A DNA stretch of 64,000 nt, from NCBI GenBank assembly GCA_964036045.1, contig OZ038378.1, positions 200,384,001 to 200,448,000 on the forward strand, written 5' to 3'. Below the pieces are notes generated by a model. That model was not told the origin of the DNA. It did not search any database and saw only the letters and a program-made list of their open reading frames with translations. Both the position numbers and the translations under genes were made by a program. The first letter of the stretch is position 1, and each line of letters begins with the position of its first letter. Source of the DNA: Eutreptiella sp. 'Long Island Sound 2002'. Lineage: Eukaryota > Protista > Euglenida. This document shows, in pieces, positions 35,129 to 59,716 of this stretch.

Positions 35129-35300
35129 GCCCCTTAGCACCTCAGAACAGCAACTGCCCTGGGCATGACAGATACCTCACACCGCAATGCTCAGTTGCCT
35201 TATTTCCAACAAAACAAACCCAGTAAAAAAACACAAACCCGAGAAATCCGTTTTTTTGTGAACTGATTCCATTGGGCAAATTTCTCCTTCCATGACATTA

Positions 35301-37400: not shown

Positions 37401-38379
37401 AGCTGCTTTGATAGGTGGGCATCATTTGGGGAACACTGAATCTGTGCTGATACCTATTGCTGGGACTTTGACTTTGGTGCGCAGGACTGTGGAAGGAACC
37501 TCTAACAACAGTGGTGTACAAAGCTCAACTGCCCAAAACTGTGGCGTTGCTTGCCTTGCCAAACTCCCCCAAAATACAACATCCAAAAAAGGGTGTAGGG
37601 TATTAAATACAGGTGTAAAAGGTGGATCGCGGAATGGGTTGGAGCTCATGCATATTGGTGCTCTCCTACCTCAGGGCCTCACCTGGGCAGATGTGACCCC
37701 TCCCTACCCTAGTTCACCCCAACCGCCAGGCTACTGATCTGGAAGTTCCCGGGTTCTGAGGAGGTTAACAGGTTCACCACAGGGGTATAACAAGGCATCA
37801 CTGCAGCATGCCACGTCTCCTGCCCTCTAGATCATCAGCAATGGCTGTGTCGCCTACCCGCAAAAATGATTTGACCCGATTGGGCTTAAAACTGGCATGT
37901 GAGAACAAACAAATTGTGCTTCACATTGTGTTCTGAAACCGGATTTGTGGTGAATATCTTCATCATACATTGGAAAAGGCGTTTTTGCTCTTTGCACCTG
38001 CATCTTTGGGTGGCAAAAATCACACCTGCCTTACTCTGCAGCTCTGCTTTCTAGCAGGGGAAATTTGAGGATCAACACATGCAAATACATTGGACATTCC
38101 TGGGCACAATGGTGGTCAGTAACAGATACCGGATGCCACGCAATTCCAGCCCATGTTCTCAATGTCCATTTGTGTGCTCCAATATGCTACAGAGATCTGT
38201 GTCACAGCATCACTGTGCAAAAAAGACGATATAGCACTCGCCCCTCGGCAAGGAAAACGATATATAGCACTCTCTCCTGACAAAAAAAAAAGCAGTATAC
38301 AGCACTCTCCTGTACAAACGATGTACAGCACCCTCCCGTGTACAAAAAAAAAACAATTTCTTCGGACGGCCTTGGATTA

Positions 38380-40605: not shown

Positions 40606-41256
40606 CTGGCAGAGACAAAGATCCACATGCCTACAACGATACTTGTGCTGTGTCGCCCCCCTGGCATCGAGGTGCACTACCCATTTAATGGCGGGATGCC
40701 CAGCCAAGACATGGGCCCGGTACAGAAACTCCTCAGCCTTGTCCTGAGAGAATGAGGTGGCCAGGAACCCTGGAACACGATACACCTTCCCGGGCACATA
40801 AAATGTTTGGTGCTCATCTGACAAGCCACCTCCGCGCCAACAAATCCCATTGGAAGGAAAATTGACAGCACCGGATGGTCGCCTGATGACACATAAGGTG
40901 TTTATACCACGCACAAGGGTGGCCAGATGCCTCATGCCACCTGGTGCATCGGCACGTATGGCCTCATTGATGATGTTGCACAATGCCTTCCCATGTTGAG
41001 AGGAGAGGGGTAAGGGGGAGGTCCACAGACGCTGAGCAGCTGCCGGAACCTCAGTCAGCAGCTCGTCCTTGACCCTAAATGCTTCATTTTGCAATCGCTG
41101 AAAAAAATCTTTGCAATATGAATAATTGATGTCATGCACTTTACAATAGGCAGCTATGACCTCACATACTGCCTCCATCAGTTGATGTTGAAACTCGGGG
41201 GCCTTAGCCTGGTCATACGCCTTTCGGAACTCAGACGTACTCAAGGTACGCAGGGC
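40606..41256 (-). CDS. Second ADP-ribosyltransferase-like exon (helical subdomain plus R and S-T-S motifs), paralogous to the kinase-fused ART
   Basis: Phase-0 acceptor tttcctcag|GCC at 41256. Translation 'ALRTLSTSEFRKAY..LCNIINEAIR..ICWRGGGL..YRVPGFLATS..RCRHV'. Candidate donor CAG|GT at 40606. The catalytic ExE was not found. Confidence 0.7.
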
Positions 41257-42111
41257 CTGAGGAAAAGCAAAGGTGTTTACGTTGTCAAAGTCTGTGCTCC
41301 AAACGGTTGGAGTGGGGTCGCCCGGCTGTTGAGGCTTCCAGAAAAGCATTCGGCCTTCTCAGGGACATTGAGGGTAGAGGACCCGAGAGAGGGGTTAAGA
41401 AGCTGCTCACCACTGCCAGCAAAAAAGGCACTCCGCAGTGGACGAAGTGTGAATACTCTGCGCGAAGATATTTCTGCAATGCACTACCGGCAAGTCACGG
41501 GTTGCTGAGCTAGCACCCATGGCCTTGTGTGACATTCGCGTTGCTGGTTGTGGTGAGCACCCCCCAGCCTGGGGTCTTCGTGATGACCGCTTAACGGGCA
41601 CTGATTAGTGGAGGTTATGGGCAGCAGTTGCAGGGATGCAGGCAGGCTAAAGTAACACAGGGCTGTCTGTGTCGCTTTGTGAGGGCAAGTGGGGCCTACG
41701 ACAGGGGAGAGCGGGGGGGGTAGGCATGCAAACATGAACTAGGGCTACACGCAAGCGTTGAGTGAAATTGGGTGCAGCAGGGCGGGGGTTTGCAGAAATT
41801 CAGGTATAATCCAGGGCTGTGAGCAGGCACTGAGTGTGAGCAAGATGGGGTACGGCTAGGACAGGTGGGGTGTAACCAGGAGTAGGGGTGCAGGAATGGC
41901 AGGCGAATTTGGGGGTGGGTGCATGAGGTCCAAACTCCGTGACCTTCCAGAGTATTGCATGATGGAATGATGTTGTGTTCCTGATGTTGGTAGTGTAGCA
42001 AACCCATCACACATCCAAAGCGACGAATCTCGCCTCCAAATGGATGTGCACCAGCCCACAAACCACAAATGTCAAGCCACAGCAACAACACAAAGGTGAA
42101 CAGAAACAAAA

Positions 42112-43133: not shown

Positions 43134-45134
43134 TCAAGCCCAGGGGGCGAGAGGCAAATTTTCTGGTGCCCTCTGATTGTCGAATTCTGCCCTCAAAACC
43201 ACCGTGTGTGGCTTCTGAATGGTGGGTGCATCTTGCCACTCAACGGCCTCCACCGTGAAGGCCGAGTAGGGCGCAAAGAGGAACTCATTCTCGACTGCCA
43301 CGTTAGGGTTCGGTCCGAGGGAGCCATCGTGGATTGATATGAAATTGACATGTTTGCATCCCCGTGGGTCCAGCTTAATGGTCCACAAGACTTTATCCTC
43401 TTGCTGGCGCTCCATGAACTTCTTCGTCACCTGGATTTGGTCGGAAGTGGATAAAAACATCGGGACACGGTATTGCTTGCCTTGGACAAAGAAATGGCGG
43501 TGACGTTCAGGGAGCCCACCACCACGAAAGACTGTATTGTCCTTTGGCCACAAGATGGGCGCAGCTTCAGGTGCACGCCGCGTCACACAGAAGGTGTTAA
43601 TAGCACGGGTAATGGTCACGGCATGGATCACCTCATCCATCCTGAGCGCTTCATTGAGGATGCTGCACAATTCTCGCCCTTGAAAGGCTTCTGCAGTTGT
43701 GTACATGCGCATTGCACAGCACTTCAGTTTGTCTGCGTCTATCAGCTCATCAAGACCACCCGCCGTGAATGCAAGTCGCTGTACTTTTGCAAAATACTCA
43801 TCGGCCGCAGCGAGGTCATGGCCATGGCGCTGTGCAAACTGCCCGATCAAGGAACGGACACTCTCCATCAGCTCCGCTTGGCGAAGTGGGATGGACTCCG
43901 TGCGTGTAACGAGGATGCTGTACAATTTTTTGAACTGGCTCGTCCCGAAAGTGCGCAATGCCGACAACAATGGCGCCTTTACATCTGCGAAAGATGGCCT
44001 GTCATCGGGATTCTGGGCCCAGCACTCTCTCATGACATGGACAAGCAGAGCATTACTACTCTCTGGCGAAACATCTGGCCGCTTTTGAGCAACATATACT
44101 GCCTTCATCACCGCTGCCTCATTCTTTCCTTCCCATGGCCTGCTTCCATGCAGCAGTTCCCAGAGGATTATGGCATAGGAATAGACCTCGCTTTTCGGGC
44201 CGAATTCGTTATCGTACTGTTCTGGGGCCTTGTAAGCAAGAGTTCCTGCTGCAGCACGCATTGTGTGTCTCGTCGTGCTGATGTTGGGATTGACTGCAAG
44301 ACCAAAATCAGTAATCTTTGGTGTACAACAGGGACCATACAGGAGGACGTTGTCGCTCTTGAGGTCATGATGGAGAGTAGGCCCATTGGAATGAAGGAAA
44401 GCCATACCTTCAGCAATGCCAGTCGCCAGCTGCAGCTGCAAGAGCTCGTCATATAAGACTTTGGAGCGGTCGTGGTCGAGCAGCGCACGTAGTGAACCGG
44501 CTGGGGCAAGTTCCATGAGAAGACCAATCGAAGTGGGATCGTCGAGAACCACGCCGCATTGCTGCACGATGTTATCATGTGTGAGGCTCTGCAGCACTCG
44601 AAACTCGCGGCGTATGGAAGCCACAAGTTCTGCGTGCTCCGTTTCGGAAACGCCACCGAGGTTCACCTGCTTGAATGCCAACTGTTTATTGTTGAGCGTC
44701 ACTTCGTAAACAATGGCGTGCGAGCCCCTGCCTATCCTCTTTAGGACCTTGAGCGTTGCAGAGGGCACCTCAAAATCAGAGGCATTGAATTTGATGTGAC
44801 GCTGAGCTAACTGTCGGAGGGCCTCGACGTTCTGTGCCGCTCCCGGGCCAAAAGCTGCCTGCAGCGTGTCGACGCTGGTGTCCACAATGTCAGAGAGGTT
44901 AAGGATGCCTAAATCGAGGAGCGGGAGGGGAGAAAGGTCCAACTTCTGAAGTAAGGACAACAGGGTCTTGTCGAGCTTGCGTTTGGCAGCCAGCATCTTC
45001 TCGGCAACATCGGTGATCGTGATATTACCGTCCATCTGAAGCGCTTGCAGCAACACGAACTCCAGAATGTCTGCATTGACCTCCAACAGAGGCTGCTGGA
45101 GCATCGACTGCAGCTGTTGGCTGACAAGGGAACC
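43134..45134 (-). CDS. Terminal exon encoding a TKL-like non-RD protein kinase fused to an R-S-E mono-ADP-ribosyltransferase
   Basis: Kinase: IGRGSHAIVY, LAFK, RREF, LHHDLKSDN, ITDFG, GTLAYKAPE, EVYSY, DRPSF. ART: VFRG, FLSTS, ENEFLF. Phase-0 acceptor tttccag|GGT at 45134; stop TGA at 43134-36. Confidence 0.9.
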   Translation of the reverse strand, partial: GSLVSQQLQSMLQQPLLEVNADILEFVLLQALQMDGNITITDVAEKMLAAKRKLDKTLLSLLQKLDLSPLPLLDLGILNLSDIVDTSVDTLQAAFGPGAAQNVEALRQLAQRHIKFNASDFEVPSATLKVLKRIGRGSHAIVYEVTLNNKQLAFKQVNLGGVSETEHAELVASIRREFRVLQSLTHDNIVQQCGVVLDDPTSIGLLMELAPAGSLRALLDHDRSKVLYDELLQLQLATGIAEGMAFLHSNGPTLHHDLKSDNVLLYGPCCTPKITDFGLAVNPNISTTRHTMRAAAGTLAYKAPEQYDNEFGPKSEVYSYAIILWELLHGSRPWEGKNEAAVMKAVYVAQKRPDVSPESSNALLVHVMRECWAQNPDDRPSFADVKAPLLSALRTFGTSQFKKLYSILVTRTESIPLRQAELMESVRSLIGQFAQRHGHDLAAADEYFAKVQRLAFTAGGLDELIDADKLKCCAMRMYTTAEAFQGRELCSILNEALRMDEVIHAVTITRAINTFCVTRRAPEAAPILWPKDNTVFRGGGLPERHRHFFVQGKQYRVPMFLSTSDQIQVTKKFMERQQEDKVLWTIKLDPRGCKHVNFISIHDGSLGPNPNVAVENEFLFAPYSAFTVEAVEWQDAPTIQKPHTVVLRAEFDNQRAPENLPLAPWA

Positions 45135-48100
45135 CTGGAAATGATTTAGCAAGGCAAGGAAACCGGGGGTTGGGGGGGGATGAGGCAGGGATGGAGGGAA
45201 GGTAAGGAGAGCAGCCGACGCGTGGAAATGCAGCAAAGGGAGAAAGCACAAACCTAAAATGAGGAGTGAATTGATGAAGAGCCGAAACACGCACAGCAAC
45301 CTCAACAACATCGGGTTCTCAGGCCAACAACGCAAAGCCCTGTTCCAGGCGCATTCATGCGAGGTTTACCTGCAACCCTTCCGCTCCCCATGCACTGCAT
45401 GCCCCTGCATTATGGTCTATTGTTCTGCAGCCCTGATACACATCCACAGTACAAGGAAAAAGGATCCTGCTACCAGGGTACAGTGTCTGCTGTTCATGTC
45501 ACAAGTCTCAACCTGCAGATCAGGTCCACCAACAGGAACGAAAATCCAACCCGTCTACCATCAGTTGTCTGCCAATTTACTTCTGTGGAACGCCATCCAT
45601 CCAAAGCGTTCTCTTGGTTCACAGAGGCGTCGCGGTGGCCACAAACCGGACAACTGTTAGGGCGGAGGGGCTTTCAATGGGGGGTTCCAGCCTCCCCTGA
45701 CCAGGGCCCTCCTTCAAAATCTCAAGAGGCTGGCATTCCACATTCCTACTACAACGGCCTCAGACGTCACTGAAACTGCAAAATCCAGAAATACGCTACT
45801 TTGCAATCAGCGGTGACAGGGTGGATCGGAAACTCCATGGTATTGGGACGTGGTGAACGTTGGCCCCCTACCATTTTGACCCCGCAGGCTTGAATATGGC
45901 CCCTGGGTTCACGTTGGCTGTTTAATGGTCCAACCCTTGGCCTCAACCGCTACCCTCCCCCCAGTCTACTAGGAACTTGAAGCCCTCTCCCCCCCAATCG
46001 AACAGCTTGCAGCCCTTTGGCGAATATTCAAAGCTCTTCAAAGCAATCGACCATTGGCATTGGGGACTTGGTAGTTGCTGCAAAGATGGCGCATGGAGGC
46101 ATGTGGACTGGGCATCCACTGCAGCACCCCGCTTAACAAACCGAGGCTGGCTGTAATTGGATAGCACACCTCAAGCCGTGTCTCCTCCGGTTCTATTCTG
46201 TGCCCTTGCTCTCCGAAATGATCATCTGCAACATTGTAGCAGACATGGACCAGAGGAACCCCTCCCCCTTTTGCAGGATGACTCGTGGCTCAGGCTACAC
46301 CAGCGATTCGGCCAAACAGATGGGGGAGGGGGGTAATTTGGGGTTTCCAGATCCGATGATCAGATGCCCCCCCAAAAAGGCTGCACATTACGCGAGAACA
46401 CGGGCAAAATATGGCCTGTCAGCTTTGGCAAGTATACAAAGTAGAATGTGAAATTGTGGACAAGAGCGGACGCCTCTTTTGTAGAGGTGCAACACACACA
46501 CATTGCCACAGTACCTTGTGTCAAGCTGCGCAAGATTGGATCGCCAGGTGGGGCCAAATTCTTGACGGATGGCGGGACATCATTAACAGTCTACCAGCAG
46601 TGTCGATGCGACCAGTCATTCCACACCAGTTCCAAAGGAGCCAGTCGGACAGGTTGGCAGATCTCAACAGGTCATGCATACGACTGTCTGGTTGCACAGC
46701 TCCTCACTGTGCGCCTTGAAAGCCACGCACATCACAGGGCCGCATTGACATCCCTGGACTCCAAGTTTGAACACATTGCAGCCACTTCTGCCTCAGCAAG
46801 ATATTGAAATGGTCCGAATCCACGGCCAGAGCCAGGCAAATTGGCGGGGTGGCCTGTTTCGGTTATGGGAAAGAAAGACCCCGCGTGTCCCCACACTTGT
46901 ACGCAGACGCTCAGATAGAAGTGATTAGGGGTTCCAGTTGGTGTATGGGTCCAGTTGGTAGTCAGAATTGCATTTTTTCAGCAAGGGCACCGACCACAGG
47001 ACTTGGAGTCCAAAAAAATTGTGCTGCTATGTGGCGTGTGGTACCTGAGTGCCCAATCCCTTGTGCAGGTGTGGGCCCAACGCAGCAAGAGCTGCGGCCA
47101 CAGGACTTGGAGTCCAGGAAAGTGATGCGGGTGCGTGGTATGGTACCCGAGTCCCCGATCATCACTTGCGCAGGTGTGGGCCCAAGTTGCTTGTTCTTGG
47201 AATTGTCGGTGAAAAATGGAAAATCTGGTGGACTGGCACAGGAACTGTCCCGGGGCATGCAAAGGTACGCCCCAGCTGGACATTGTGCCTGCTGCAGGGG
47301 CATAGGGGCTGTAGCAGAAGGGCAGCAGTGAAAATGGAATGATGGTAGTACCTTGGGATGCAGAATGTAGTGAAATGGGTGTGCCCCAGGGAGTAAGAGG
47401 GGGGTAGGGGGAGGCATGGGTATCAACCCCTGCCAGTTATTGGTGCATGCACCAGTACAACCCCCGCCGCAGACAGGGTGCAGCAGAAGGTGGGTACCTG
47501 AAAAGGTACAGGGCACACGGACCACCATCATGATCTTGCTCATTGCATCATTGGAAATGCGGTTGTCTGAGTGCAGAAAAGAGCGCAATCAGGAGGAGGG
47601 GACAGGAGGTTGGTCTGAATTAGGGAACGGGGGACCCCCTTCCGCCTCCTTGGCATTTGAAAAACAACACACAGCACAGGGCAAGAGAAGCCACAGAAGC
47701 ACATCGGCGACACCGGACCTCAATTGAGGACCGTGCAGCAGTTATCACCGACCGAAAATACGCTGAATGGCATCCGCATTGATTGGCTCGATGCTCCTTC
47801 TCACGTTTCCAGTCCCATTTTTCTGCCGTGTAATCATCCATCTGCATTCTTCTGTCGTTCGTTACATCACTTGGTACATTCATGAAACCCCAGTGCCAAA
47901 ACGAACGGGGCACAACGATGCCGAAGCTGGTCACAGGTCGGATCATTTGAGTCTGTTATAATGTGAGTTTTGACGCTGTGTTCACGTCCGTGGTCGACTT
48001 TCTTGCTGCAAGATTAGCAAAACAGCAGCCCACCATTGTTATACAGAACACACACACACACAGTCACACACATAACGGAAAAGGTGAGCGCTGATCCCTA

Positions 48101-51100
48101 ACCCCAGCTTCCCACCCCAGTGCACCTTCCATTCCCTCCTTCCCACTGGCACCCCACAACAACAAAAAGTGCGTGCGGCACAGGCCGCTTCGCTCCGGAA
48201 CCCCTTCGCACCTCAGAACTGCAACTGCCCTGGGCATGACGGACACCTCAGGCTCCAATGCAACAGTGAGGCAGGGCTCTGCAGGGACAGAGGGTGCTGT
48301 GGTCCTGAACAAGGTCGCATGGCGGCAGGAAACCACCAGGTCTGCATCCATTCTGCCCAAGACAACAGCCACAACATACCTCCAAGATCCAATGATGTCA
48401 GTGATTTGCACTGCGGAAGAACAGCGGCCAACTCTTTGGTACCTTCATCCCCGATGCCATTGCCTGCACACATGACGGAGGGGGTGAGAGCACATTTCGT
48501 CGCCCTGGACAATGGGCACACGGAGCGGGAGTCACACACATAACGGAAAAGGTGAGCGCTGATCCCTAACCCCAGCTTCCCACCCCAGTGCACCTTCCAT
48601 TCCCTCCTTCCCACTGGCACCCCACAACAACAAAAAGTGCGTGCGGCACAGGCCGCTTCGCTCCGGAACCCCTTCGCACCTCAGAACTGCAACTGCCCTG
48701 GGCATGACGGACACCTCAGGCTCCAATGCAACAGTGAGGCAGGGCTCTGCAGGGACAGAGGGTGCTGTGGTCCTGAACAAGGTCGCATGGCGGCAGGAAA
48801 CCACCAGGACTGCAGCTGAGGCGTCTGCATCCATTCTGCCCAAGACAACAGCCACAACATACATTCAAGATTCAATGATGTCAGCGATTTGCAATGCGGA
48901 AGAACAGCGGCCAACTCTTTGGTACCTTCATCCCCGATGTGATTATCTGCACACATGACGGAGGGGGTGAGAGCACATTTCGTCGCCCTGGACAATGGGC
49001 ACACGGAGCGGGAGTCACACACATAACGGAAAAGGTGAGCGCTGATCCCTAACCCCAGCTTCCCACCCCAGTGCACCTTCCACTCCCTCCTTCCCACTGG
49101 CACCCCACAACAACAAAAAGTGCGTGCGGCACAGGCCGCTTCGCTCCGGAACCCCTTCGCACCTCAGAACTGCAACTGCCCTGGGCATGACGGACACCTC
49201 AGGCTCCAATGCAACAGTGAGGCAGGGCTCTGCAGGGACAGAGGGTGCTGTGGTCCTGAACAAGGTCGCATGGCGGCAGGAAACCACCAGGTCTGCATCC
49301 ATTCTGCCCAAGACAACAGCCACAACATACCTCGAAGATCCAATGATGTCAGTGATTTGCACTGCGGAAGAACAGCGGCCAACTCTTTGGTACCTTCATC
49401 CCCGATGCGATTATCTGCACACATGACGGAGGGGGTGAGAGCACATTTCGTCGCCCTGGACAATGGGCACACGGAGCGGGAGTCACACACATAACGGAAA
49501 AGGTGAGCGCTGATCCCTAACCCCAGCTTCCCACCCCAGTGCACCTTCCATTCCCTCCTTCCCACTGGCACCCCACAACAACAAAAAGTGCGTGCGGCAC
49601 AGGCCGCTTCGCTCCGGAACCCCTTCGCACCTCAGAACTGCAACTGCCCTGGGCATGACGGACACCTCAGGCTCCAATGCAACAGTGAGGCAGGGCTCTG
49701 CAGGGACAGAGGGTGCTGTGGTCCTGAACAAGGTCGCATGGCGGCAGGAAACCACCAGGACTGCAGCTGAGGCGTCTGCATCCATTCTGCCCAAGACAAC
49801 AGCCACAACATACTTCCAAGATCCAATGATGTCAGCGATTTGCACTGCGGAAGAACAGCGGCCAACTCTTTGGTACCTTCATCCCCGATGCGATTATCTG
49901 CACACATGACGGAGGGGGTGAGAGCATATTTCGTCACCGTGGACAATGGGCACACGGAGCGGGAGTCACACACGTAACGGAAAAGGTGAGCGCTGATCCC
50001 TAACCCCAGCTTCCCACCCCAGTGCACCTTCCACTCCCTCCTTCCCACTGGCACCCCACAACAACAAAAAGTGCGTGCGGCACAGGCCGCTTCGCTCCGG
50101 AACCCCTTCGCACCTCAGAACTGCAACTGCCCTGGGCATGACGGACACCTCAGGCTCCAATGCAACAGTGAGGCAGGGCTCTGCAGGGACAGAGGGTGCT
50201 GTGGTCCTGAACAAGGTCGCATGGCGGCAGGAAACCACCAGGACTGCAGCTGAGGCGTCTGCATCCATTCTGCCCAAGACAACAGCCACAACATACTTCG
50301 AAATTTCATTGATGTCAGCGATTTGCAATGCGGAAGAACAGCGGCCAACTCTTTGGTACCTTCAACCCCGATGCCATTGCCTGCACACATGACGGAGGGG
50401 GTGAGAGCATATTTCGTCACCTGGGCAATGGGCACACGGAGCGGGAGTCACACACATAACGGAAAAGGTGAGCGCTGATCCCTAACCCCAGCTTCCCACC
50501 CCAGTGCACCTTCCATTCCCTCCTTCCCACTGGCACCCCACAACAACAAAAAGTGCGTGCGGCACAGGCCGCTTCGCTCCGGAACCCCTTCGCACCTCAG
50601 AACTGCAACTGCCCTGGGCATGACGGACACCTCAGGCTCCAATGCAACAGTGAGGCAGGGCTCTGCAGGGACAGAGGGTGCTGTGGTCCTGAACAAGGTC
50701 GCATGGCGGCAGGAAACCACCAGGACTGCAGCTGAGGCGTCTGCATCCATTCTGCCCAAGACAACAGCCACAACATACCTCCAAGATCCAATGATGTCAG
50801 CGATTTGCACTGCGGAAGAACAGCGGCCAACTCTTTGGTACCTTCAACCCCGATGCGATTGCCTGCACACATGACGGAGGGGGTGAGAGCACATTTCGTC
50901 GCCCTGGACAATGGGCACACGGAGCGGGAGTCACACACGTAACGGAAAAGGTGAGCGCTGATCCCTAACCCCAGCTTCCCACCCCAGTGCACCTTCCATT
51001 CCCTACTTCCCACTGGCACCCCACAACAATTAAAAGTGCGTGCGGCACAGGCCGCTTCGCTCCGGAACCCCTTCGCACCTCAGAACTGCAACTGCCCTGG

Positions 51101-54100
51101 GCATGACGGACACCTCAGGCTCCAATGCAACAGTGAGGCAGGGCTCTGCAGGGACAGAGGGTGCTGTGGTCCTGAACAAGGTCGCATGGCGGCAGGAAAC
51201 CACCAGGACTGCAGCTGAGGCGTCTGCATCCATTCTGCCCAAGACAACAGCCACAACATACATCCAAGATTCAATGATGTCAGCAATTTGCACTGCGGAA
51301 GAACAGCGGCCAACTCTTTGGTACCTTCATCCCCGATGTAATTATCTGCACACATGACGGAGGGGGTGAGGGCACATTTCGTCGCCCTGGACAATGGGCG
51401 CACGGAGCGGGAGTTGCACACATAACGGAAAAGGTGAGCGCTGATCCCTAACCCCAGCTTCCCACCCCAGTGCACCTTCCATTCCCTCCTTCCCACTGGC
51501 ACCCCACAACAACAAAAAGTGCGTGCGGCACAGGCCGCTTCGCTCCGGAACCCCTTCGCACCTCAGAACTGCAACTGCCCTGGGCATGACGGACACCTCA
51601 GGCTCCAATGCAACAGTGAGGCAGGGCTCTGCAGGGACAGAGGGTGCTGTGGTCCTGAACAAGGTCGCATGGCGGCAGGAAACCACCAGGACTGCAGCTG
51701 AGGCGTCTGCATCCATTCTGCCCAAGACAACAGCCACAGCATACTTCGAAATTTCATTGATGTCAGCGATTTGCACTGCGGAAGAACAGCGGCCAACTCT
51801 TTGGTACCTTCATCCCCGATGCCATTGCCTGCACACATGACGGAGGGGGTGAGAGCATATTTCGTCGCCCTGGACAATGGGCACACGGAGCGGGAGTCAC
51901 ACACACAACGGAAAAGGTGAGCGCTGATCCCTAACCCCAGCTTCCCACCCCAGTGCACCTTCCATTCCCTCCTTCCCACTGGCACCCCACAACAACAAAA
52001 AGTGCGTGCGGCACAGGCCGCTTCGCTCCGGAACCCCTTCGCACCTCAGAACTGCAACTGCCCTGGGCATGACGGACACCTCAGGCTCCAATGCAACAGT
52101 GAGGCAGGGCTCTGCAGGGACAGAGGGTGCTGTGGTCCTGAACAAGGTCGCATGGCGGCAGGAAACCACCAGGACTGCAGCTGAGGCGTCTGCATCCATT
52201 CTGCCCAGGACAACAGCCACAACATACATTCAAGATCCAATGATGTCAGCGATTTGCACTGCGGAAGAACAGCGGCCAACTCTTTGGTACCTTCAACCCC
52301 GATGCCATTCCCTGCACACATGACGGAGGGGGTGAGAGCACATTTCGTCGCCCTGGACAATGGGCACACGGAGCGGGAGTCACACACATAACGGAAAAGG
52401 TGAGCGCTGATCCCTAACCCCAGCTTCCCACCCCAGTGCACCTTCCATTCCCTCCTTCCCACTGGCACCCCACAACAACAAAAAGTGCGTGCGGCACAGG
52501 CCGCTTCGCTCCGGAACCCCTTCGCACCTCAGAACTGCAACTGCCCTGGGCATGACGGACACGTCAGGCTCCAATGCAACAGTGAGGCAGGGCTCTGCAG
52601 GGACAGAGGGTGCTGTGGTCCTGAACAAGGTCGCATGGCGGCAGGAAACCACCAGGACTGCAGCTGAGGCGTCTGCATCCATTCTGCCCAAGACAACAGC
52701 CACAACATACATCCAAGATCCAATGATGTCAGCGATTTGCACTGCGGAAGAACAGCGGCCAACTCTTTGGTACCTTCATCCCCGATGCGATTATCTGCAC
52801 ACATGACGGAGGGGGTGAGAGCACATTTTGTCACCCTGGACAATGGGCACACGGAGCGGGAGTCACACACATAACGGAAAAGGTGAGCGCTGATCCCTAA
52901 CCCCAGCTTCAGCACCCGCCTCCCCTGACACCCTGCGAGCACAACACTGATGTCCTCCATGGACCGACGGGCGCCTGACTGTGATCGCATGATTGTCTGG
53001 CGTCTGGTCCTGCTTCCCCGCGCGTGCGCTGCGGGACATAGACTTCTGGGCGGGCGGGCGGGCCCTCGCTCTTAAAATTAAAAGAGACTGACATGGGAGA
53101 GATGGAAGGTTCGATGGAGGGGGGGAAGGAGCTGGGGAGGCTGTGTGGGCTGAACCTACTTTGCTTCGTGAGCTACGCAACTAAGGTTCAGCACCCGCCT
53201 CCCCTGACACCCTGCGAGCACAACACTGATGTCCTCCATGGACCGACGGGCGCAGTGTGCTCGCGAATGCGAGCTGGAATTTCGTTGGGACTCTCAGCTT
53301 CTCTCTTCCCCGAAACTCACCCCCCCCCCCCCTCATCGGCCCTCGCCCGCTCTCAGCATCCAGGGGGACCTGGGGAGATACTCCAGACGTTTATAACGCT
53401 GCGGAGTCCCGCTCCACTGTCGGCGTCGCTCTTCTGCGGCTTGTATTGCCGCCTTGCGGGACGGGAGGGACTTTAACCGGCTCATGGGGTCCGCGGGATT
53501 CAGCGCGGACTCGACCCAGAAGGTGCCTATTTGCAGATTGCTCCAGAGTCGGAGCCAGAATATGCGTCGCAGGATTCGTTGCTGGACCGGGCATCCTGCT
53601 GCTGCCCGCATCCCCATAGTTTGGCAGCGGGAGACTTCGCTGTCCGTTCCTACAGTCACTACCTTCCATCCCATATAGACCGCCATTTTGCACGCCATAT
53701 ATACGCCATAGAATTCTGCCTACTGAAGCGTGCGGATCCACTGTGGGCAACGCGACGACCTGTGCAGCGTCGCGCCCACAATGCCCACCCTGAAGCCGCG
53801 TCCCTCCTCAGCCGCATCTGTGAAAAACTGGATTCCGTCTGTGCGTGGGGAGTGCTCTGCTGTGGGATTCTTGGGGCGTTCGGGGGGGTACGTGTGTGCC
53901 ACTGCACTAAAAACCAGCACAGTGCCCAACCCGCGCGCCATGCCTCTTGTGAAAACCCTGGACCCTGCCTCCAGCGCCCTGTAGCTGCCTGCCATAAAAC
54001 AGGAAAGCCCCGCCCCCGGCCGCGACAGCCAGCAGAGCTGCCCCAGCAGCTTGCGGAGGCGCCGCGGCTCCACGGTACCCCGACCCACGGCACGCACCCA

Positions 54101-57100
54101 CGCACGCAGCGCGCTCTGGACTCCACCCTTGGCGTTCTGTATGGTTCTCTGTTTGCTGTCTATATGCTTTCCAATGAAGCTGATGGCACGCACAGGCTTG
54201 GGCTCACTTTTAATGCTAATTATAAAGCCGGCCCGCCGCAGGCGGCTCGTGACTCTGCGGACCGCACTCCTCAGCTCCCTTTTGCTGCCTGCACAGAACA
54301 ATATATCATCAATGTAGACCCAGGCCCTTGCCGAGGTCCCCCGAAGGGCCCCTGCGACGATACTGCGGACCAAGGTCTGGCACACCAGTGGCGAGTAGCG
54401 CCAGCCGAAGGGCAGACGCGTGTACCTGTACGCCCTGCCGTCCGCGGAGCGTAAGACGAAAATGCGGCGCCACAGGCGCGGCAGCTTTATGCTCCAGAAT
54501 GCGTTCTGAATGTCTAATTTCGCCAGCCAGGGGGCTTTACCCCCCCCCACCTCCCCCCTCAGCCAGTCCCTCAGACCCTCAAGGCCTGGCAGCCGGAATT
54601 TCGCCGGGCTGCGCGCGTCGGCCTCATTTATTGGGGTGGCGTCTAAAATCATACGACATTTCTCCCGATTTTTCGGGCGTAAAAACGCTCGGGCGGTGGG
54701 GCGCAGCCTTGTGCGCTTTACCCCCTTCGTATCTGCCCGGATGGCTCGCATCATCAGTGGCAGCTTTGGGCAGCGCGATTCTAACCCCCCCCCCCCCCCC
54801 TGCGACTGGGCGTACACTGCCGCCAGCCCCCGCGGTACGAGCCTGTCCCACAGGGACTGGTGCACTGTGACTTCCCCCGCCTCCCCCAGACCCGCCGCAG
54901 CCGCCCCCTCCGGGATGTCCCCCTCCTCTTCTGATGAGTAATACCCGTCCTCTTCGCCCTCCAAACCCTCTTCCGCCACCCCCCCCAGTGCCGCCTCCAA
55001 AATTGATTTTTCGCCCACCGCTGTGTCCTCGCTTCCCCCCACCAGGGCCCGCTCAGCCTCCAGCAGCCCCAGAACCGCCCCCCTGACCATGTCCTTACGT
55101 CCTGCTTTGACGCCTGGCAGGCGGCTTATTGCCTCTGCCACCCGCCGGTGTCTCGGCAGCACCGCTGGCGGATCCCCCGCGGCCCCGCCCACCGACTTGG
55201 TCTCCGTCTCCGCCTTCCGGCTCCACTGCTCTGGCCGTTGGCTCCTCTCGCCGCTCGACTTGCAGCTGCCTTTGCGCCCTTGGCCTTGCCGTTGAGCGCC
55301 CCGAATGTCGCTGCGCCTTCTGCGGCTTCTCCTTCGGCGACTCCTCGACTTCGACCACCGTGACCCGCGGCGACGTTGTCCGCGTCCTCTTGCGACCCGC
55401 CTCGCTGCCGGCAGCCCCACGCGACCCAGGCCCAGCAGGTCGGATAGCGGGGACTTCGAGCTCGCGCCGCACCCAGCCGGGCCACATGCCGAGCGTGGTG
55501 CCCGCCGCCATCTCCGCTTTTGGGGTCCTGCCATCCCATGCCGGCTGCACCAGGGGTCCCCCACGCACGAAGCTCCACCGCGGGGGCGCCGTGTAGTAGA
55601 TTTGCGCAACCGCCGGCGTCTTCCAGCCCCCCCAGAGCATAATGAAGCGCACCGGGAGGCCGAGACCGTACAGTTGCGCAGCGCCGTATCTGCGGAACGA
55701 GTGCCAGCGCGTATTTTTGTAGCTGCCACCCGGCCTGTCGAGGAGGCCCCGCAGCCCGTCGTGCAGCCCGTCTCGCCCCCGGAACCACGCTGGTCGGTCC
55801 GGGTGATAGCCGTGGAGGGCGCGCAGCCGCGCCAGGAATCCTGCCCATCTCGCCGTCCACGGCCCCATGCTCTGTCGCTGCTCTCCGGCCCGCGACTTCG
55901 TTCCCGTGAAGACCAGCTCCTCTCCGTCGGCGCGGGCGGTGATGGCCTCGCTGGCCCTGAGGCAGTGCGAGCAAGACAGCGCGGCAAGGGCGACGATTTC
56001 CCACTCCGCGGCCGACCCTGCAGCGGCAGCCATGTGTTGTAGTGCGCCCATGCTGGCCCACTCCTTAACTGTCGTCCGTCCTGCCTTTTCGGCAGCCTTT
56101 GCTGCCCCCACCGCGAGGTACCAGTCTCCCGGTCGGACAGTGCGGCGCAGCCACCCCAGTTTTTCGAGTAGTCGCACCGCGGACAGAACCTTTTTGACTG
56201 CGCTTTCTCCCATGCCCTTCTCGACCAGGGAGGCGAGCTCGTCTTCCAGGACCCGTCGCCTGTGGCATCCTGGCTGCATCCTCTCTCTCCTTCTGAGGTG
56301 GCTGAGCGCCTGCAGATACCCCTCGAGGGTCGTGTCGCTGAGCCCTCGGACGACAGATGCGTCGTAGCCGGCTCCCCAGCCCCCACGCAGGGCCTGCCCG
56401 AGCCGCTCGGCGCCATCGGCAATGGGCAGATCCCGCTCTGCGGTTCACCTCGTCCCTTTTCCCCGCGTGCAGCCCCACTCGTCGCGATCAAAATACCAGT
56501 GGGCCTGCCCACAGTCTCCACACTTCGTCTTCGGGGGGTCCGTGCAATCTTCCCACGCTCCCGTGCGCTTGGACTTGAAGTGACGCCTCCCGTTCAGCAG
56601 GGTGAACTCGGTGTTGGCCGCGGAGCCTGTCCCGCGCCAGATCTCGCCTTCCTTGCGGCCCGCTATGCTGCTGCCCGCATGGCGCGCGGTACTCCTCTGC
56701 GGCGATCTACGCCTCCGCCCCCGTGACCTCCCGGAGGATGATGAAGAGCTGCTTGACGTCGTGCCGCTGCCGCTCGTGCTGCTGTCCTCGCTGTCGCTGC
56801 TGCTGTCTTTCCCGGCGCGCCCTTTTCCCTTTCGCTTCCGGTCCTTCTTTCGCTGCCGTCGCGCCTTCTTCTTCTCTTTGCGCCGCTTTTCCTTCATCTT
56901 GGCCTTTAGGTCATCAGCCCCAGTGACGTCACAGTCCAACAGGATCTTCCACACCTTTGCTGCCAGCGGTGGTGGCCCCTCGGCCCCCATCTCCTCGTCC
57001 TCTCGCAGCTGGGATTCCAGGGCCTTGCACAGCTTGATAGTCCACCGGGGCGCTCCCGCCCGCCTGCGCATGCTCCGGACCGCGCGCGTCGTCAGGCGGT

Positions 57101-59104
57101 TCCACTTGTCCCGTTCGCCCCGCTCCTCCTTGCCGTCCTCGTCGTCCGCTCCGATGCCTCCTCCGGCAGGCACCTTCCCCGGCTGCGTACCCGCTGATGG
57201 CCCCGCGTCGACTGTCCCCACGCGGCCGCCGTGATGGTGTCCTCCCGCGGCCGCTCGCTCCAGGTCCTGCAGAGACGCGCAGAGCTCAAAAGCCGCCTCT
57301 GATTGCGGCTGCGCCAACTCCAAATCGGGGACTTCGATGCCCCACGCCAGGCTTAACCCAAACAGGAATGCATCCCTGTAGGCCATAAAATTTTTGCAGA
57401 CCAGGCACACGTTGAGTGTGCGATTGAACAGCAGGGCCAGCTTGGAGGTGTTCAGCCTGGCCGTCTTCGTCCAGAATCGCACCCCCGCGTCGAGTACCCC
57501 ATGCCTGCTCTCGGTGGGCACCTCCGTTGCGCGCCAGTGCTCCCCCATGAGGCTGCACCACGCCCAGTCGAGCACATTTTCGTCTTGGGCCCGCAGCTTT
57601 TCCCACGACCATGCCCCCTCGCCGTCCAGCTGCTCTGTGGTTGACATGTCCCCCTGGCGGCCCTCGCTCTTAAAATTAAAAGAGACTGACATGGGAGAGA
57701 TGGAAGGTTCGATGGAGGGGGGGAAGGAGCTGGGGAGGCTGTGTGGGCTGAACCTACTTTGCTTCGTGAGCTACGCAACTAAGGTTCCCACCCCAGTGCA
57801 CCTTCCATTCCCTCCTTCCCACTGGCACCCCACAACAACAAAAAGTGCGTGCGGCACAGGCCGCTTCGCTCCGGAACCCCTTCGCACCTCAGAACTGCAA
57901 CTGCCCTGGGCATGACGGACACCTCAGGCTCCAATGCAACAGTGAGGCAGGGCTCTGCAGGGACAGAGGGTGCTGTGGTCCTGAACAAGGTCGCATGGCG
58001 GCAGGAAACCACCAGGACTGCAGCTGAGGCGTCTGCATCCATTCTGCCCAAGACAACAGCCACAACATACCTCGAAGATCCAATGATGTCAGCGATTTGC
58101 ACTGCGGAAGAACAGCGGCCAACTCTTTGGTACCTTCATCCCCGATGCCATTGCCTGCACACATGACGGAGGGGGTGAGAGCATATTTCGTCGCCCTGGA
58201 CAATGGGCACACGGAGCGGGAGTCACACACATAACGGAAAAAGTGAGCGCTGATCCCTAACCCCAGCTTCCCACCCCAGTGCACCTTCCATTCCCACTGG
58301 CACCCCACAACAACAAAAAGTGCGTGCGGCACAGGCCGCTTCGCTCCGGAACCCCTTCGCACCTCAGAACTGCAACTGCCCTGGGCATGACGGACACCTC
58401 AGGCTCCAATGCAACAGTGAGGCAGGGCTCTGCAGGGACAGAGGGTGCTGTGGTCCTGAACAAGGTCGCATGGCGGCAGGAAACCACCAGGACTGCAGCT
58501 GAGGCGTCTGCATCCATTCTGCCCAAGACAACAGCCACAACATACATTCAAGATTCAATGATGTCAGCGATTTGCACTGCGGAAGAACAGCGGCCAACTC
58601 TTTGGTACCTTCATCACCCATGCCATTCCCTGCACACATGACGGAGGGGGTGAGAGCACATTTCGTCGCCCTGGACAATGGGCACACGGAGCGGGAGTCA
58701 CACACATAACGGAAAAGGTGAGCGCTGATCCCTAACCCCAGCTTCCCACCCCAGTGCACCTTCCATTCCCACTGGCACCCCACAACAACAAAAAGTGCGT
58801 GCGGCACAGGCCGCTTCGCTCCGGAACCCCTTCGCACCTCAGAACTGCAACTGCCCTGGGCATGACGGACACCTCAGGCTCCAATGCAACAGTGAGGCAG
58901 GGCTCTGCAGGGACAGAGGGTGCTGTGGTCCTGAACAAGGTCGCATGGCGGCAGGAAACCACCAGGACTGCAGCTGAGGCGTCTGCATCCATTCTGCCCA
59001 AGACAACAGCCACAACATACATCCAAGATTCAATGATGTCAGCGATTTGCACTGCGGAAGAACAGCGGCCAACTCTTTGGTACCTTCAACCCCGATGCCA
59101 TTCC
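43134..59104 (-). CDS. Spliced LRR(x13)-kinase-ART gene model; the 5' part is not identified and probably lies right of 59.7 kb
   Basis: 84-nt LRR exons, each flanked by atgtgtgcag| and |gtatg: 59021-59104, 58546-58629, 58071-58154, 52711-52794, 52228-52311, 51745-51828, 51262-51345, 50779-50862, 50297-50380, 49814-49897, 49331-49414, 48863-48946, 48380-48463. Consensus xNxIGDEGTKELAAVLPQCKSLTSLxLx, with no stops after splicing. The join to 46170-46225 and 43134-45134 is inferred from phase. Confidence 0.7.
46170..46225 (-). CDS. Putative 56-nt linker exon joining the LRR array (phase 1) to the kinase exon (phase 0)
   Basis: Acceptor atgttgcag|AT, similar to the LRR acceptor atgtgtgcag, and donor GAG|GTGTGC. 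Encodes '(D)DHFGEQGHRIEPEETRLE', which resembles a final NxIGDEG LRR turn. Phases match on both sides. Confidence 0.5.
48064..52910 (-). repeat. Tandem exon-intron array, left block (10 LRR exons; period 483, 482 or 468 bp)
   Basis: Exon starts are spaced 483, 468, 483, 483, 482, 483, 483, 483, 483 bp. Introns are nearly identical. Confidence 0.97.
53333..55090 (-). CDS. pol: Reverse transcriptase-RNase H with one premature TAG (53720-53722) in RNase H
   Basis: RT: CRMILDA, KLDIQNAFW, LPFGWRYSP, YIDD. RNase H: FTDAA, LQ*AEF, GTDS, NPADPMSR. The ATG lies 4 nt after the YR stop. Confidence 0.92.
55095..56279 (-). CDS. Tyrosine recombinase of the YR retrotransposon
   Basis: Catalytic set: R (CLRASE), K (GTKS), HxxR (WHSFRR), W (WGGWKT), Y (AQIYY). 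Confidence 0.92.
   Translation of the reverse strand: MQPGCHRRRVLEDELASLVEKGMGESAVKKVLSAVRLLEKLGWLRRTVRPGDWYLAVGAAKAAEKAGRTTVKEWASMGALQHMAAAAGSAAEWEIVALAALSCSHCLRASEAITARADGEELVFTGTKSRAGEQRQSMGPWTARWAGFLARLRALHGYHPDRPAWFRGRDGLHDGLRGLLDRPGGSYKNTRWHSFRRYGAAQLYGLGLPVRFIMLWGGWKTPAVAQIYYTAPPRWSFVRGGPLVQPAWDGRTPKAEMAAGTTLGMWPGWVRRELEVPAIRPAGPGSRGAAGSEAGRKRTRTTSPRVTVVEVEESPKEKPQKAQRHSGRSTARPRAQRQLQVERREEPTARAVEPEGGDGDQVGGRGRGGSASGAAETPAGGRGNKPPARRQSRT
56445..57692 (-). CDS. gag: gag-like ORF1 of the YR retrotransposon
   Basis: 415-aa ORF (the likely start could also be ATG 57647) with K/R-rich and S-rich tracts and a C-terminal 'CGDCGQAHW' Cys/His motif. Homologous to 10907..11389. Confidence 0.65.
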   Translation of the reverse strand: MSVSFNFKSEGRQGDMSTTEQLDGEGAWSWEKLRAQDENVLDWAWCSLMGEHWRATEVPTESRHGVLDAGVRFWTKTARLNTSKLALLFNRTLNVCLVCKNFMAYRDAFLFGLSLAWGIEVPDLELAQPQSEAAFELCASLQDLERAAAGGHHHGGRVGTVDAGPSAGTQPGKVPAGGGIGADDEDGKEERGERDKWNRLTTRAVRSMRRRAGAPRWTIKLCKALESQLREDEEMGAEGPPPLAAKVWKILLDCDVTGADDLKAKMKEKRRKEKKKARRQRKKDRKRKGKGRAGKDSSSDSEDSSTSGSGTTSSSSSSSSGRSRGRRRRSPQRSTARHAGSSIAGRKEGEIWRGTGSAANTEFTLLNGRRHFKSKRTGAWEDCTDPPKTKCGDCGQAHWYFDRDEWGCTRGKGTR

Positions 59105-59345
59105 CTGCACACATGACGGAGGGGGTGAGAGCACATTTCGTCGCCCTGGACAATGGGCACACGGAGCGCGAGTCACACACATAACGGAAAAGGTGAGCGC
59201 TGATCCCTAACCCCAGCTTCCCACCCCAGTGCACCTTCCATTCCCTCCTTCCCACTGGCACCCCACAACAACAAAAAGTGCGTGCGGGACAGGCCGCTTC
59301 GCTCCGGAACCCCTTCGCACCTCAGAACAGCAACTGCCCTGGGCA
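57788..59345 (-). repeat. Tandem exon-intron array, right block (3 LRR exons; period 475 bp)
   Basis: Same unit; two introns carry an 8-bp deletion. The spacing 52711 to 58071 equals 483 plus the 4877-bp insertion. Confidence 0.97.
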
Positions 59346-59716
59346 TGACGGATACCTCAGACCGCAACGCTCAGTTGCCTAACTTCCAACAAAACAAACC
59401 CAGTAAAGAAACACATACCACAGAAAGGCGCTTTTTTGGTGAACTGATTCAATTGGGCAAATTTGTCCTTCCATGACATTATGACAAGATCAACAAAAGT
59501 AAAATCTTCGACAAAGAGCACACATTATTCTAGCCATATCAACTGACGTTGGTGTTCAGGGTTAAAACAAGTACTGTAAGGGCAAGCCCCAAGAAGGTCG
59601 GCTGTGGGCGATAGATTGGCAAAATTACCATAAGCTGCTATGACAGGTGGGCATCATTTAGGGAACACTGAATCTGTGCTGATACCTATTGTTGGGACTT
59701 TGACTTTGGTGCGTAG
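59311..59716. repeat. Dispersed repeat homologous to 35131..37492 but with a single copy of the 150-bp satellite unit
   Basis: Both loci share the left flank 'cacctcagaacagcaactgccctgggcatgac..ccttccatgacatta' and the right flank 'taagctgct..gggaacactgaatctgtgctgatacctatt..aggactgtgga'. Confidence 0.92.

Follow-up and report, generated by a model that had tools for sequence, protein, structure and literature searches.

Uniform introns and diversified exon edges in a tandem array of leucine-rich-repeat exons of the euglenid Eutreptiella

Array A and its leucine-rich repeats

A tandem array of leucine-rich-repeat (LRR) exons was analysed in a window of 64,000 nucleotides from Eutreptiella sp. 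'Long Island Sound 2002' (C1:200384001-200448000 of the 2.28-Gb assembly). Coordinates given without a chromosome or contig are positions of this window (1-64,000). The array, referred to as array A, lies on the minus strand at 48062-59360 and comprises 13 units, each consisting of an 84-nt exon and an intron of about 399 nt, with a period of 475-483; both ends fall within intron sequence. Paralogous arrays elsewhere in the genome are designated B-F. Tandem Repeats Finder resolved array A into two blocks (48062-52910 and 57816-59360) with a unit of 475-483 bp and 96-97% identity. A conserved exon core of 44 nt is present in 13 copies on the minus strand and in 0 copies on the plus strand of the window. 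Every core sits in an 84-nt exon that is bordered by ...gtgtgcag upstream and by gtatg downstream (13/13). The exons are listed below in the order of transcription.

59021-59104, minus strand: LRR exon 1, begins ..NGIGVEGTKELAAVLPQCKSLTSLNLG
58546-58629, minus strand: LRR exon 2, 84 nt
58071-58154, minus strand: LRR exon 3, 84 nt
52711-52794, minus strand: LRR exon 4, 84 nt
52228-52311, minus strand: LRR exon 5, 84 nt
51745-51828, minus strand: LRR exon 6, 84 nt, 3' edge MKFR
51262-51345, minus strand: LRR exon 7, 84 nt
50779-50862, minus strand: LRR exon 8, 84 nt
50297-50380, minus strand: LRR exon 9, 84 nt, 3' edge MKFR
49814-49897, minus strand: LRR exon 10, 84 nt
49331-49414, minus strand: LRR exon 11, 84 nt
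48863-48946, minus strand: LRR exon 12, 84 nt
48380-48463, minus strand: LRR exon 13, 84 nt, both borders crossed by DNA contigs of independent sequencing runs

The exons are symmetric (phase 1-1): the last base of the preceding exon and the two leading bases of the next form a split codon, which is followed by 27 whole codons. Each exon thereby encodes one 28-residue LRR of the ribonuclease-inhibitor (RI) type, which in LRR order reads L-T-S-L-x-L-x-x-N-x-I-G-x-E-G-T-K-E-L-A-A-V-L-P-Q-C-K-S. A preliminary description of the locus, made from the window alone, had given the variable part of the exons as L(D/N/K)(L/F)(G/E/R)x-N(G/H/R/Y)(I/M)G(D/V), next to an invariant core EGTKELAAVLP. Both hold for the 13 aligned exons, and further variation was found at LRR positions 4 (L/M), 25 (Q/H) and 28 (S/L).

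The introns of array A are of the GT-AG type and 384-399 nt long. Introns 1-12 measure 391, 391, 399, 399 (four times), 398, 399, 399, 384 and 399 nt, where the value for intron 3 was obtained after subtraction of a 4877-bp insertion. The few intron substitutions noted earlier were borne out (18/389 sites variable). Instead of two small indels, however, three types are present, namely 8 nt (introns 1-2), 15 nt (intron 11 and the partial intron 13) and 1 nt (intron 8).

RI-like LRRs of 28-29 residues have the consensus LxxLxLxxNx(L/C)xxxgoxxLxxoLxxxxx, in which positions 1, 4, 6, 9 and 11 form the core and a short beta-strand lines the concave face (PMC2946307). Including the paralogous arrays described below, 99 of 100 exons have 84 nt, and their 28-residue repeats fit this consensus as L-T-S-L-x-L-x-x-N-x-I-G-x-E-G-T-K-x-L-A-A-V-L-P-Q-C-K-S. 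Positions 1, 2, 3, 14, 17, 19, 20, 22-24, 26 and 27, among them L1, L19 and L23, are invariant over all 100 exons, and L4 (95%) and N9 (96%) are nearly so. Entropy is highest at position 8 (2.9 bits, 11 residues), whose codon is the one split by the intron, followed by positions 10 (2.0), 7 (1.8), 13 (1.05), 18 (1.0) and 5 (0.8). Position 18 represents an E/A dimorphism on the helix that is restricted to arrays C-F. The hypervariable positions 5, 7, 8, 10 and 13 are all non-core ('x') positions of LxxLxLxxNxI, located on the beta-strand and in the following loop. The substitutions seen at the core positions 4 (L/M/W) and 6 (L/F/Y) are conservative. By consensus register, the variable sites are thus predicted not to be buried, and their side chains are likely to be exposed on the concave face. 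In ribonuclease inhibitor, the hot-spot residues for binding of RNase occupy positions 5, 7, 8 and 10 of the repeats.

A single exon of 27 amino acids matched Pfam LRR_6 with an E-value of 0.026 and 15 bits, which is below the cut-off of 23.4 bits. Two intronless stretches of four contiguous LRRs, 69-88% identical to an array exon in DNA or protein sequence, were found on chromosome C14 (L039:2881-3201, minus strand; L040:4905-5228, plus strand) and may be processed copies or multi-LRR exons. The L039 stretch aligned in the same register to designed RI-like LRRs, ribonuclease inhibitor, NOD2 and NLRP3 (E-values 7e-11 to 1e-3).

Diversity of exons and introns in six arrays

Nucleotide diversity (pi) in array A amounts to 0.0775 for exons and 0.0100 for introns, a 7.8-fold difference, and 17/84 exon sites are variable compared to 18/389 intron sites (Fisher p 1.2e-5). 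The excess is confined to the exon edges, that is nucleotides 1-16 and 72-84, where pi reaches 0.200 or about 20 times the intron value, while the exon core (nucleotides 17-71) shows a pi of 0.013, the same as the introns. No intron window of 15 nt was as diverse as either edge (0/378). The diversity of the edges stops at the splice junctions, since the 16 intron nucleotides abutting each junction have a pi of 0.010 and 0.000 in array A and of 0-0.03 overall. The two classes of sequence also differ in the frequency of their variants: 14/17 variable exon sites segregate at intermediate frequency, while 14/18 intron variants are singletons. Variants alter the encoded residue at 15 of these 17 exon sites; the other two, TCA/TCG and GGG/GGT, are the only synonymous variants, as previously reported. 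Exons are richer in transversions than introns (transitions to transversions 45:57 versus 67:37, p 0.005).

DNA and protein searches of the 2.28-Gb genome revealed 87 further exons in five paralogous arrays, giving 100 exons in six arrays on four chromosomes.

C23: array B, 13 units
C14: array C, 18 units
C20: array D, 13 units
C20: array E, 18 units
C20:11210517-11221426 (L042/L043): array F, 25 units

All 100 exons retain their splice sites and an open frame, and 99 of them are 84 nt long and of phase 1-1. The remaining exon, unit 8 of array B (L031; C23 at about 18873.6 kb), has 99 nt because of an in-frame insertion of 15 nt, and is missing the Asn that belongs to the asparagine ladder as well as the Gly of its EG motif. 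Several units of array F are duplicated internally, so that units 1-3 reappear as units 8-10, and five introns of this array are shortened to 270 nt.

Across the six arrays pi ranges from 0.010 to 0.014 in introns, from 0.007 to 0.021 in exon cores, from 0.048 to 0.078 in whole exons and from 0.11 to 0.20 at the edges, which are 9-20 times as diverse as the introns. For whole exons the excess over introns expected from the preliminary description is 3.7-5.0-fold in the five paralogous arrays. As the same contrast recurs in six arrays, the pattern is a property of the family and not an accident of array A. Array A is diverged by about 10% from the other arrays; nonetheless, intron pi is nearly equal in all six, which suggests that mutation and homogenisation have reached a steady state, rather than that six bursts happen to be equally old. 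The introns of arrays C-F differ by only 1.5-1.7%, yet their series of surface residues differ.

For the ten edge codons of arrays A-E, the Nei-Gojobori method gave nonsynonymous diversities (pN) of 0.12-0.22, about 11-21 times the corrected intron pi, and ratios to synonymous diversity (pN/pS) of 2.0-8.3, with 2.8 in array A. For the 18 core codons pN/pS was at most 1 wherever pS was not zero. Thus a ratio above 1, as anticipated for the variable sites, was obtained at the edges of five arrays by Nei-Gojobori counts. Taken together, the five arrays carry 75 extra amino-acid states and 8 extra synonymous codons, where the site proportions predict 3:1 (binomial p 5e-4), and 0 stop codons in 2095 codons. 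Array A has about 24 nonsynonymous edge sites, of which 13 are variable, compared to 18/389 intron sites (p 2e-10). With the introns as a built-in neutral yardstick, the evidence for selection comes from more than codon models.

Homogenisation acts within arrays. In a tree of the introns, array A formed a clade with a support of 1.0 and array B one with 0.74, while arrays C-F were intermixed. Between array A and the other arrays 30-32 intron differences are fixed, compared to a pi of 0.010 within an array, and synonymous differences extend over the whole array: Cys26 (TGC/TGT), Ser28 (TCG/TCC), Ser3 (TCA/TCG) and the third base of position 5 (GAT, AAT/GAC, AAC). Introns of A and B show 32 fixed differences and 0 shared polymorphisms, whereas their exons show 5 fixed differences and share 9/17 polymorphic sites with the same alleles. 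This contrast of polymorphic to fixed sites between exons and introns is significant for A versus B (p 0.002) and for A versus C-F (p 0.0004). The term "homogenised array" is therefore apt for introns and synonymous sites, which are fixed array-wide, while surface variants are common to arrays, in a repeat-array analogue of trans-specific polymorphism. At position 10 the codons of array A form the one-step network GGC/CGC/CAC/TAC and those of the other arrays the separate one-step network TCC/TCG/TTG/TGG/ACC/CCC/TAC. The D/N variants of array A bear its own third base and were thus not imported from the sequenced paralogues.

A conserved order of exon types between arrays was not found: none of the 15/15 array pairs was more similar than shuffled arrays (all p >0.19), arrays of equal length included. 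Linkage of the two edges within an exon, or of edges across an intron, was not significant; only the last base versus the next two bases gave a p of 0.04 in these tests. In arrays A-E 64/75 exons are distinct. Scrambled order, unlinked edges and this number of distinct exons together speak against the view that old residues specific to each repeat have simply been preserved. By eye, the strands of array A (GW / EC / R-D,N) seemed to form a higher-order repeat of three units; it was dismissed, as edge linkage was not significant.

Gene model, transcripts and the retrotransposon in intron 3

Array A appears to feed a protein composed of LRRs, a protein kinase and an ADP-ribosyltransferase (ART), according to the following putative parts of the gene (a slash within a splice site marks the exon border).

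59419-59479, minus strand: putative first coding exon, ATG at 59479, 61 nt, phase-1 donor G/gtatgt, encodes MSWKDKFAQLNQFTKKAPFC
59105-59418, minus strand: intron 0, about 58 nt of unique sequence that merges with the array intron consensus at about 59360
47352-47566, minus strand: candidate exon 14, acceptor ctgcactcag/AC at 47567/47566, phase-1 compatible (G/AC = Asp)
43134-45134, minus strand: large exon, candidate acceptor ttccag/GGT at 45135/45134, stop at 43134-43136
52908-57784, minus strand (gene orientation): DIRS-order tyrosine-recombinase retrotransposon with split direct repeats, 4877 bp, within intron 3

Homologues of the first exon precede all six arrays (five were aligned, that of array F was found separately) with ATG and donor intact. 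The copies differ by many synonymous changes (TCA/TCG, AAG/AAA, GCC/GCG, ACC/ACG/ACA), a pattern of substitution that points to purifying selection on exon 1. A truncated second copy of the 5' end of the gene lies on the minus strand at 35255-37480; it holds an exon-1 copy (ATG near 35298) and about 110 nt of intron 0, followed by a simple repeat of the TGTGAC type, and the 150 bp preceding the start codon are amplified there about 14 times in tandem.

At the other end, the partial intron after exon 13 departs from the repeat at 48062. Candidate exon 14 encodes a degenerate last LRR, NRISNDAMSKIMMVV..., in a frame that is open for 200 codons; its 3' end was placed at the only phase-0 donor (AAG/GTACTA) fitting the next acceptor at 45135/45134. 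The large exon encodes a linker, a protein-kinase domain and a predicted C-terminal domain with the R-S-E ART fold (43137-43970, 278 residues). The kinase matched Pfam Pkinase and PK_Tyr_Ser-Thr over the full length of the profile and above the gathering score (E-values 1e-41 to 1e-43, 143-149 bits). The 278-residue domain had no sequence match in Pfam, NCBIfam or PDB. An AlphaFold2 (AF2) model built with 17 genomic paralogues (pLDDT 82, pTM 0.83) retrieved only ARTs as top Foldseek matches (Vis, XopAI, Tre1-type, HopU1, ExoS, C3; E-values 1e-8 to 1e-5, TM 0.4-0.65). The ART motifs FRGG, LSTS and ENEF are present, with R149 and S176 invariant and E229 nearly invariant in 18 paralogues. According to the model, the domain adopts the R-S-E (C3/cholera-toxin-like) ART fold. 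A partial second copy of it is located on the minus strand at 40648-41259, 2 kb downstream, and the genome contains at least 25 paralogous open reading frames (ORFs) with 35-46% identity.

No close paralogue of the kinase-ART part as a whole was detected in the genome, and it is not found behind arrays B-F, where the array module would accordingly be joined to other tails. Downstream of array C the sole match was a weak GIY-YIG nuclease (E-value 7e-4) in a frame of 427 amino acids (L034:5753-7033, plus strand), which may be part of a mobile element, Penelope-like or of another kind. In metagenomes, the nearest relatives of the kinase-ART part lack an upstream LRR array. In one metagenome contig (L041:2-8965), a gene with 45% identity to the kinase-ART part directly follows an ORF of 2401 residues with a TMEM132-type Ig domain and no LRRs. 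According to this arrangement, the effector half is paired with a different N-terminal part in that relative.

The boundaries of the retrotransposon were set by intron alignment. Once the element is subtracted, intron 3 is a normal copy of 399 nt, and the element accounts for the gap between the two blocks of Tandem Repeats Finder. It carries reverse transcriptase (RT) and phage-integrase domains (Pfam), and its split direct repeats are arranged as A1 ... B1/A2 ... B2. The element is apparently intact, with three long open frames for a gag-like protein of 415, a recombinase of 394 and an RT-bearing protein of 933 amino acids. The insertion junction has a 3-nt ambiguity (GAA) and no clear target-site duplication.

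The organism's own public sequencing runs are DNA, and their contigs are colinear with a 5.5-kb stretch including the introns. Independent DNA runs reproduced the 3' unit of array A and its flank without differences. In an estuarine metatranscriptome, exon-core unitigs reached depths of 480-1070, compared to 3.7 for an intron piece and 2-2.5 for pieces of the kinase exon, while exon-core and intron depths were similar in the DNA runs. Two metatranscriptome pieces match the kinase exon exactly, and the intron piece best fits a paralogous array. These depths suggest that exons of the family are expressed and freed of introns; the contrast does not single out array A. When products of spliced transcripts were sought with an ORF that contains exon 8 in frame, all matches were genomic ORF calls. 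The Euglena spliced-leader sequence occurs in 5458 copies in the genome versus 0 for the reversed control. The dinoflagellate spliced leader is absent from the genome, which gives no support to an origin from a dinoflagellate.

Probable diversifying selection, its alternatives and related systems

We consider it probable that the pattern arose by concerted evolution together with diversifying selection on the binding face of the LRR array. The likely gene product would be a cytosolic protein with a short N-terminus, 14 RI-type LRRs, a protein kinase and an ART-fold domain. As exon and intron repeat together as a unit of about 480 bp, unequal crossing-over and gene conversion would turn the units over and keep introns, exon cores and synonymous sites at a diversity of about 1% within each array. 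Selection would resist this homogenisation and favour new variants at positions 5, 7, 8, 10 and 13 of LxxLxLxxNxIGD, which are predicted to lie on or just after the beta-strand lining the concave face. The outcome would be a mosaic of differing binding-surface strips upon a uniform scaffold. The concave face is expected to bind a ligand, and the recognised targets are probably variable foreign or self-marker molecules. The proposal of the preliminary description, diversifying selection on a binding surface within a homogenised array, is thereby supported by the intron contrast, pN/pS, the non-core positions and the array-wide fixed differences.

Several observations weigh against this interpretation. 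In array A alone the ratio of nonsynonymous to synonymous changes, 17:2, does not differ significantly from the site proportions (p 0.12). Support comes from the comparison with introns and from the recurrence in several arrays, of which C-F are not mutually independent. The selection estimates are counts rather than a likelihood site model, which recombination would bias. The AF2 fold of a 4-LRR proxy, computed without an alignment, was unusable (pLDDT 45), and exposure of the variable residues thus relies on homology to the LRR consensus. The way in which exon 13 is joined, via exon 14, to the kinase exon is modelled, and within about 5 kb downstream of arrays B-E, as judged from the scanned flank of array C and the flank ORFs that B-E share, no domain was found. 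No exon-exon joints were present in reads or contigs, that is in the DNA contigs and short metatranscriptome unitigs, and a large protein collection yielded no protein of this gene that derives from a transcript. The depth of contigs is, moreover, an unreliable measure. Finally, the 4.9-kb retrotransposon in intron 3 may impair this gene copy.

The closest alternative is that selection merely preserves old repeat-specific residues for one conserved partner, while conversion homogenises the rest and no drive for novelty exists. Homogenised introns and cores beside non-homogenised edges are what it would produce, the same alternatives recur in all arrays (D/V at 13, G/E/R at 7, N/D at 5), and the full conservation of positions 2 and 3 (T, S) indicates that part of the concave face is indeed fixed. 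On the other side, the arrays have 13, 13, 18, 13, 18 and 25 repeats, exon-type order is no better than shuffled in 15/15 pairs, 64/75 exons of A-E are distinct with unlinked edges, and arrays C-F differ in their surface series at an intron difference of 1.5-1.7%. With 11 residues at position 8 in addition, we regard preservation as improbable. An even smaller chance is given to a mutational process that acts locally at the ends of exons, for instance by targeted hypermutation or error-prone repair, with no selection at the protein level. The restriction of variation to nucleotides 1-16 and 72-84, which holds for all units of all arrays, and the deviating mutation spectrum of the exons would fit such a process. 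Yet the 16 intron nucleotides abutting both patches remain at intron-level diversity, the changes divide into 75 amino-acid-changing and 8 synonymous with 0 stops in 2095 codons, and synonymous third positions within the patches are fixed array-wide (GAT/AAT in A, GAC/AAC elsewhere) with AAT at position 9 almost invariant. The core-facing residues L4, L6, N9 and I11, which lie inside the patches, are conserved or changed conservatively.

The array might also be a young non-functional amplification, either a pseudogene or a satellite that arose from an LRR exon, under relaxed constraint. The lack of direct RNA evidence at the locus, the transposon in intron 3, the truncated duplicate of the 5' end at 35255-37480 and the missing downstream domain of arrays B-E would be in line with this. 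Relaxed constraint, however, cannot raise diversity beyond the neutral level, and the edges exceed the introns 9- to 20-fold, while the core matches the introns in uniformity and has a pN/pS of at most 1. Furthermore, 100/100 exons keep their splice sites and frame, exon 1 is under purifying selection, and in the RNA library words from the exon core show a strong enrichment relative to those from introns. Loss of function is therefore judged very unlikely. An artefact of assembly or alignment, by which collapsed or mis-joined repeats yield false exon variants, has to be considered for long tandem repeats, which are difficult to assemble; it would have hit introns equally, whereas the variants follow the codon structure and are seen again and again in six arrays on four chromosomes, and independent DNA runs match the 3' unit and its flank without differences. 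We hardly credit this explanation.

Apart from these alternatives, one locus might supply a clonal population with a repertoire, either through the combinatorial skipping of exons or because units and arrays often undergo unequal exchange or conversion with one another at mitosis. Symmetric exons and introns that are about 99% identical within an array would permit this, and unlinked edges together with scrambled order among arrays with near-identical introns are compatible with very frequent exchange. Although we see only a slim chance for it, such a locus would parallel, in a protist, the diversification of receptors from cassettes.

The combination of concerted repeats and diversified surface residues has parallels in other eukaryotes. 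In the brown alga Ectocarpus, LRR-ROCO and LRR-kinase genes encode one LRR per symmetric exon, and the exons are reshuffled and variable in number (PMC3341825). Positively selected sites lie on the concave face, some of the proteins carry a kinase, and a role as fast-evolving pathogen receptors was proposed (Zambounis et al. 2012, PMC3341825). The euglenid arrays share with them the single symmetric exon per LRR, the reshuffling and variable number of exons, the probable selection on the concave face and, in the gene model of array A, the kinase. Ectocarpus differs by its 72-nt exons, 24-residue plant-type LRRs, ROCO GTPase effectors and intronic remnants of LRRs on the reverse strand, the euglenid by its 84-nt exons, 28-residue RI-type LRRs, a split codon at the position where variability peaks, strict tandem units of exon and intron, introns of about 99% identity and the predicted kinase-ART tail.

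In the ciliate Tetrahymena, LRR arrays with exons of 90 bp consist of tandem exon-intron units of fixed length with a single intron phase and a 'junction' amino acid (Xiong et al. 2019, PMC6564038). Lineage-specific clonal expansions, retrotransposons in or beside the repeats and some kinase fusions were described, and unequal crossing-over was proposed (PMC6564038). Tandem units, one intron phase, the split codon at the junction, a retrotransposon and, according to the gene model of array A, a kinase are common to both systems. Tetrahymena is set apart by 90-nt exons with introns of phase 2, by gene numbers in the thousands and by an element of the LINE-like type, and positive selection is not treated in PMC6564038. 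The euglenid, unlike Tetrahymena, has six arrays of the subfamily, 84-nt phase-1 exons, a tyrosine-recombinase retrotransposon and an explicit excess of variation in surface residues over introns.

The WD40 repeats of the HNWD/het-d/het-e genes of the fungus Podospora evolve in concert within and between loci and vary in number (Paoletti et al. 2007, PMC1805685). Four surface positions per repeat are under positive diversifying selection, which was explained by a model of mutation supply, reshuffling and selection (PMC1805685). Concerted repeats with diversified surface positions are thus found in both cases, and the same model is proposed here for the euglenid arrays. In Podospora the repeats are WD40 repeats within one exon, the effectors are NACHT domains and repeat-induced point mutation (RIP) is a possible mutator, whereas the LRRs of the euglenid are parted by introns that serve as the neutral yardstick.

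A literature search for Euglena and leucine-rich repeats yielded no paper on such arrays, and a pairing of kinase and ART-fold effector behind an LRR array was not found described. To our knowledge, no recognition or immune receptors of euglenids have been described. If the preferred interpretation holds, this euglenid would add a fourth lineage, after brown algae, ciliates and fungi, that uses a near-clonal scaffold with diversified binding residues, and a further instance of recognition-domain evolution converging across eukaryote supergroups. The family would then be a good candidate route to what this euglenid recognises, be it viruses, bacteria or conspecifics.

Hypervariable residues of the xxLxLxx motif, on the solvent-exposed beta-strand of the concave face, are also typical for the LRR domains of plant NLR and RLP proteins. 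There the diversity is found between alleles or paralogues and not, as in the euglenid, among near-clonal repeats of one array. The variable lymphocyte receptors (VLR) of lampreys, cited along with PGIP in PMC3341825, likewise concentrate their diversity on the concave face of LRRs; it is assembled somatically, while the euglenid data give no sign of somatic change. Conserved introns next to hyperdivergent exons are known from the phospholipase A2 (PLA2) genes of snake venoms and from conotoxin genes, where they are read as accelerated adaptive evolution. Those comparisons were made between paralogous genes, those in the euglenid between tandem units inside one gene.

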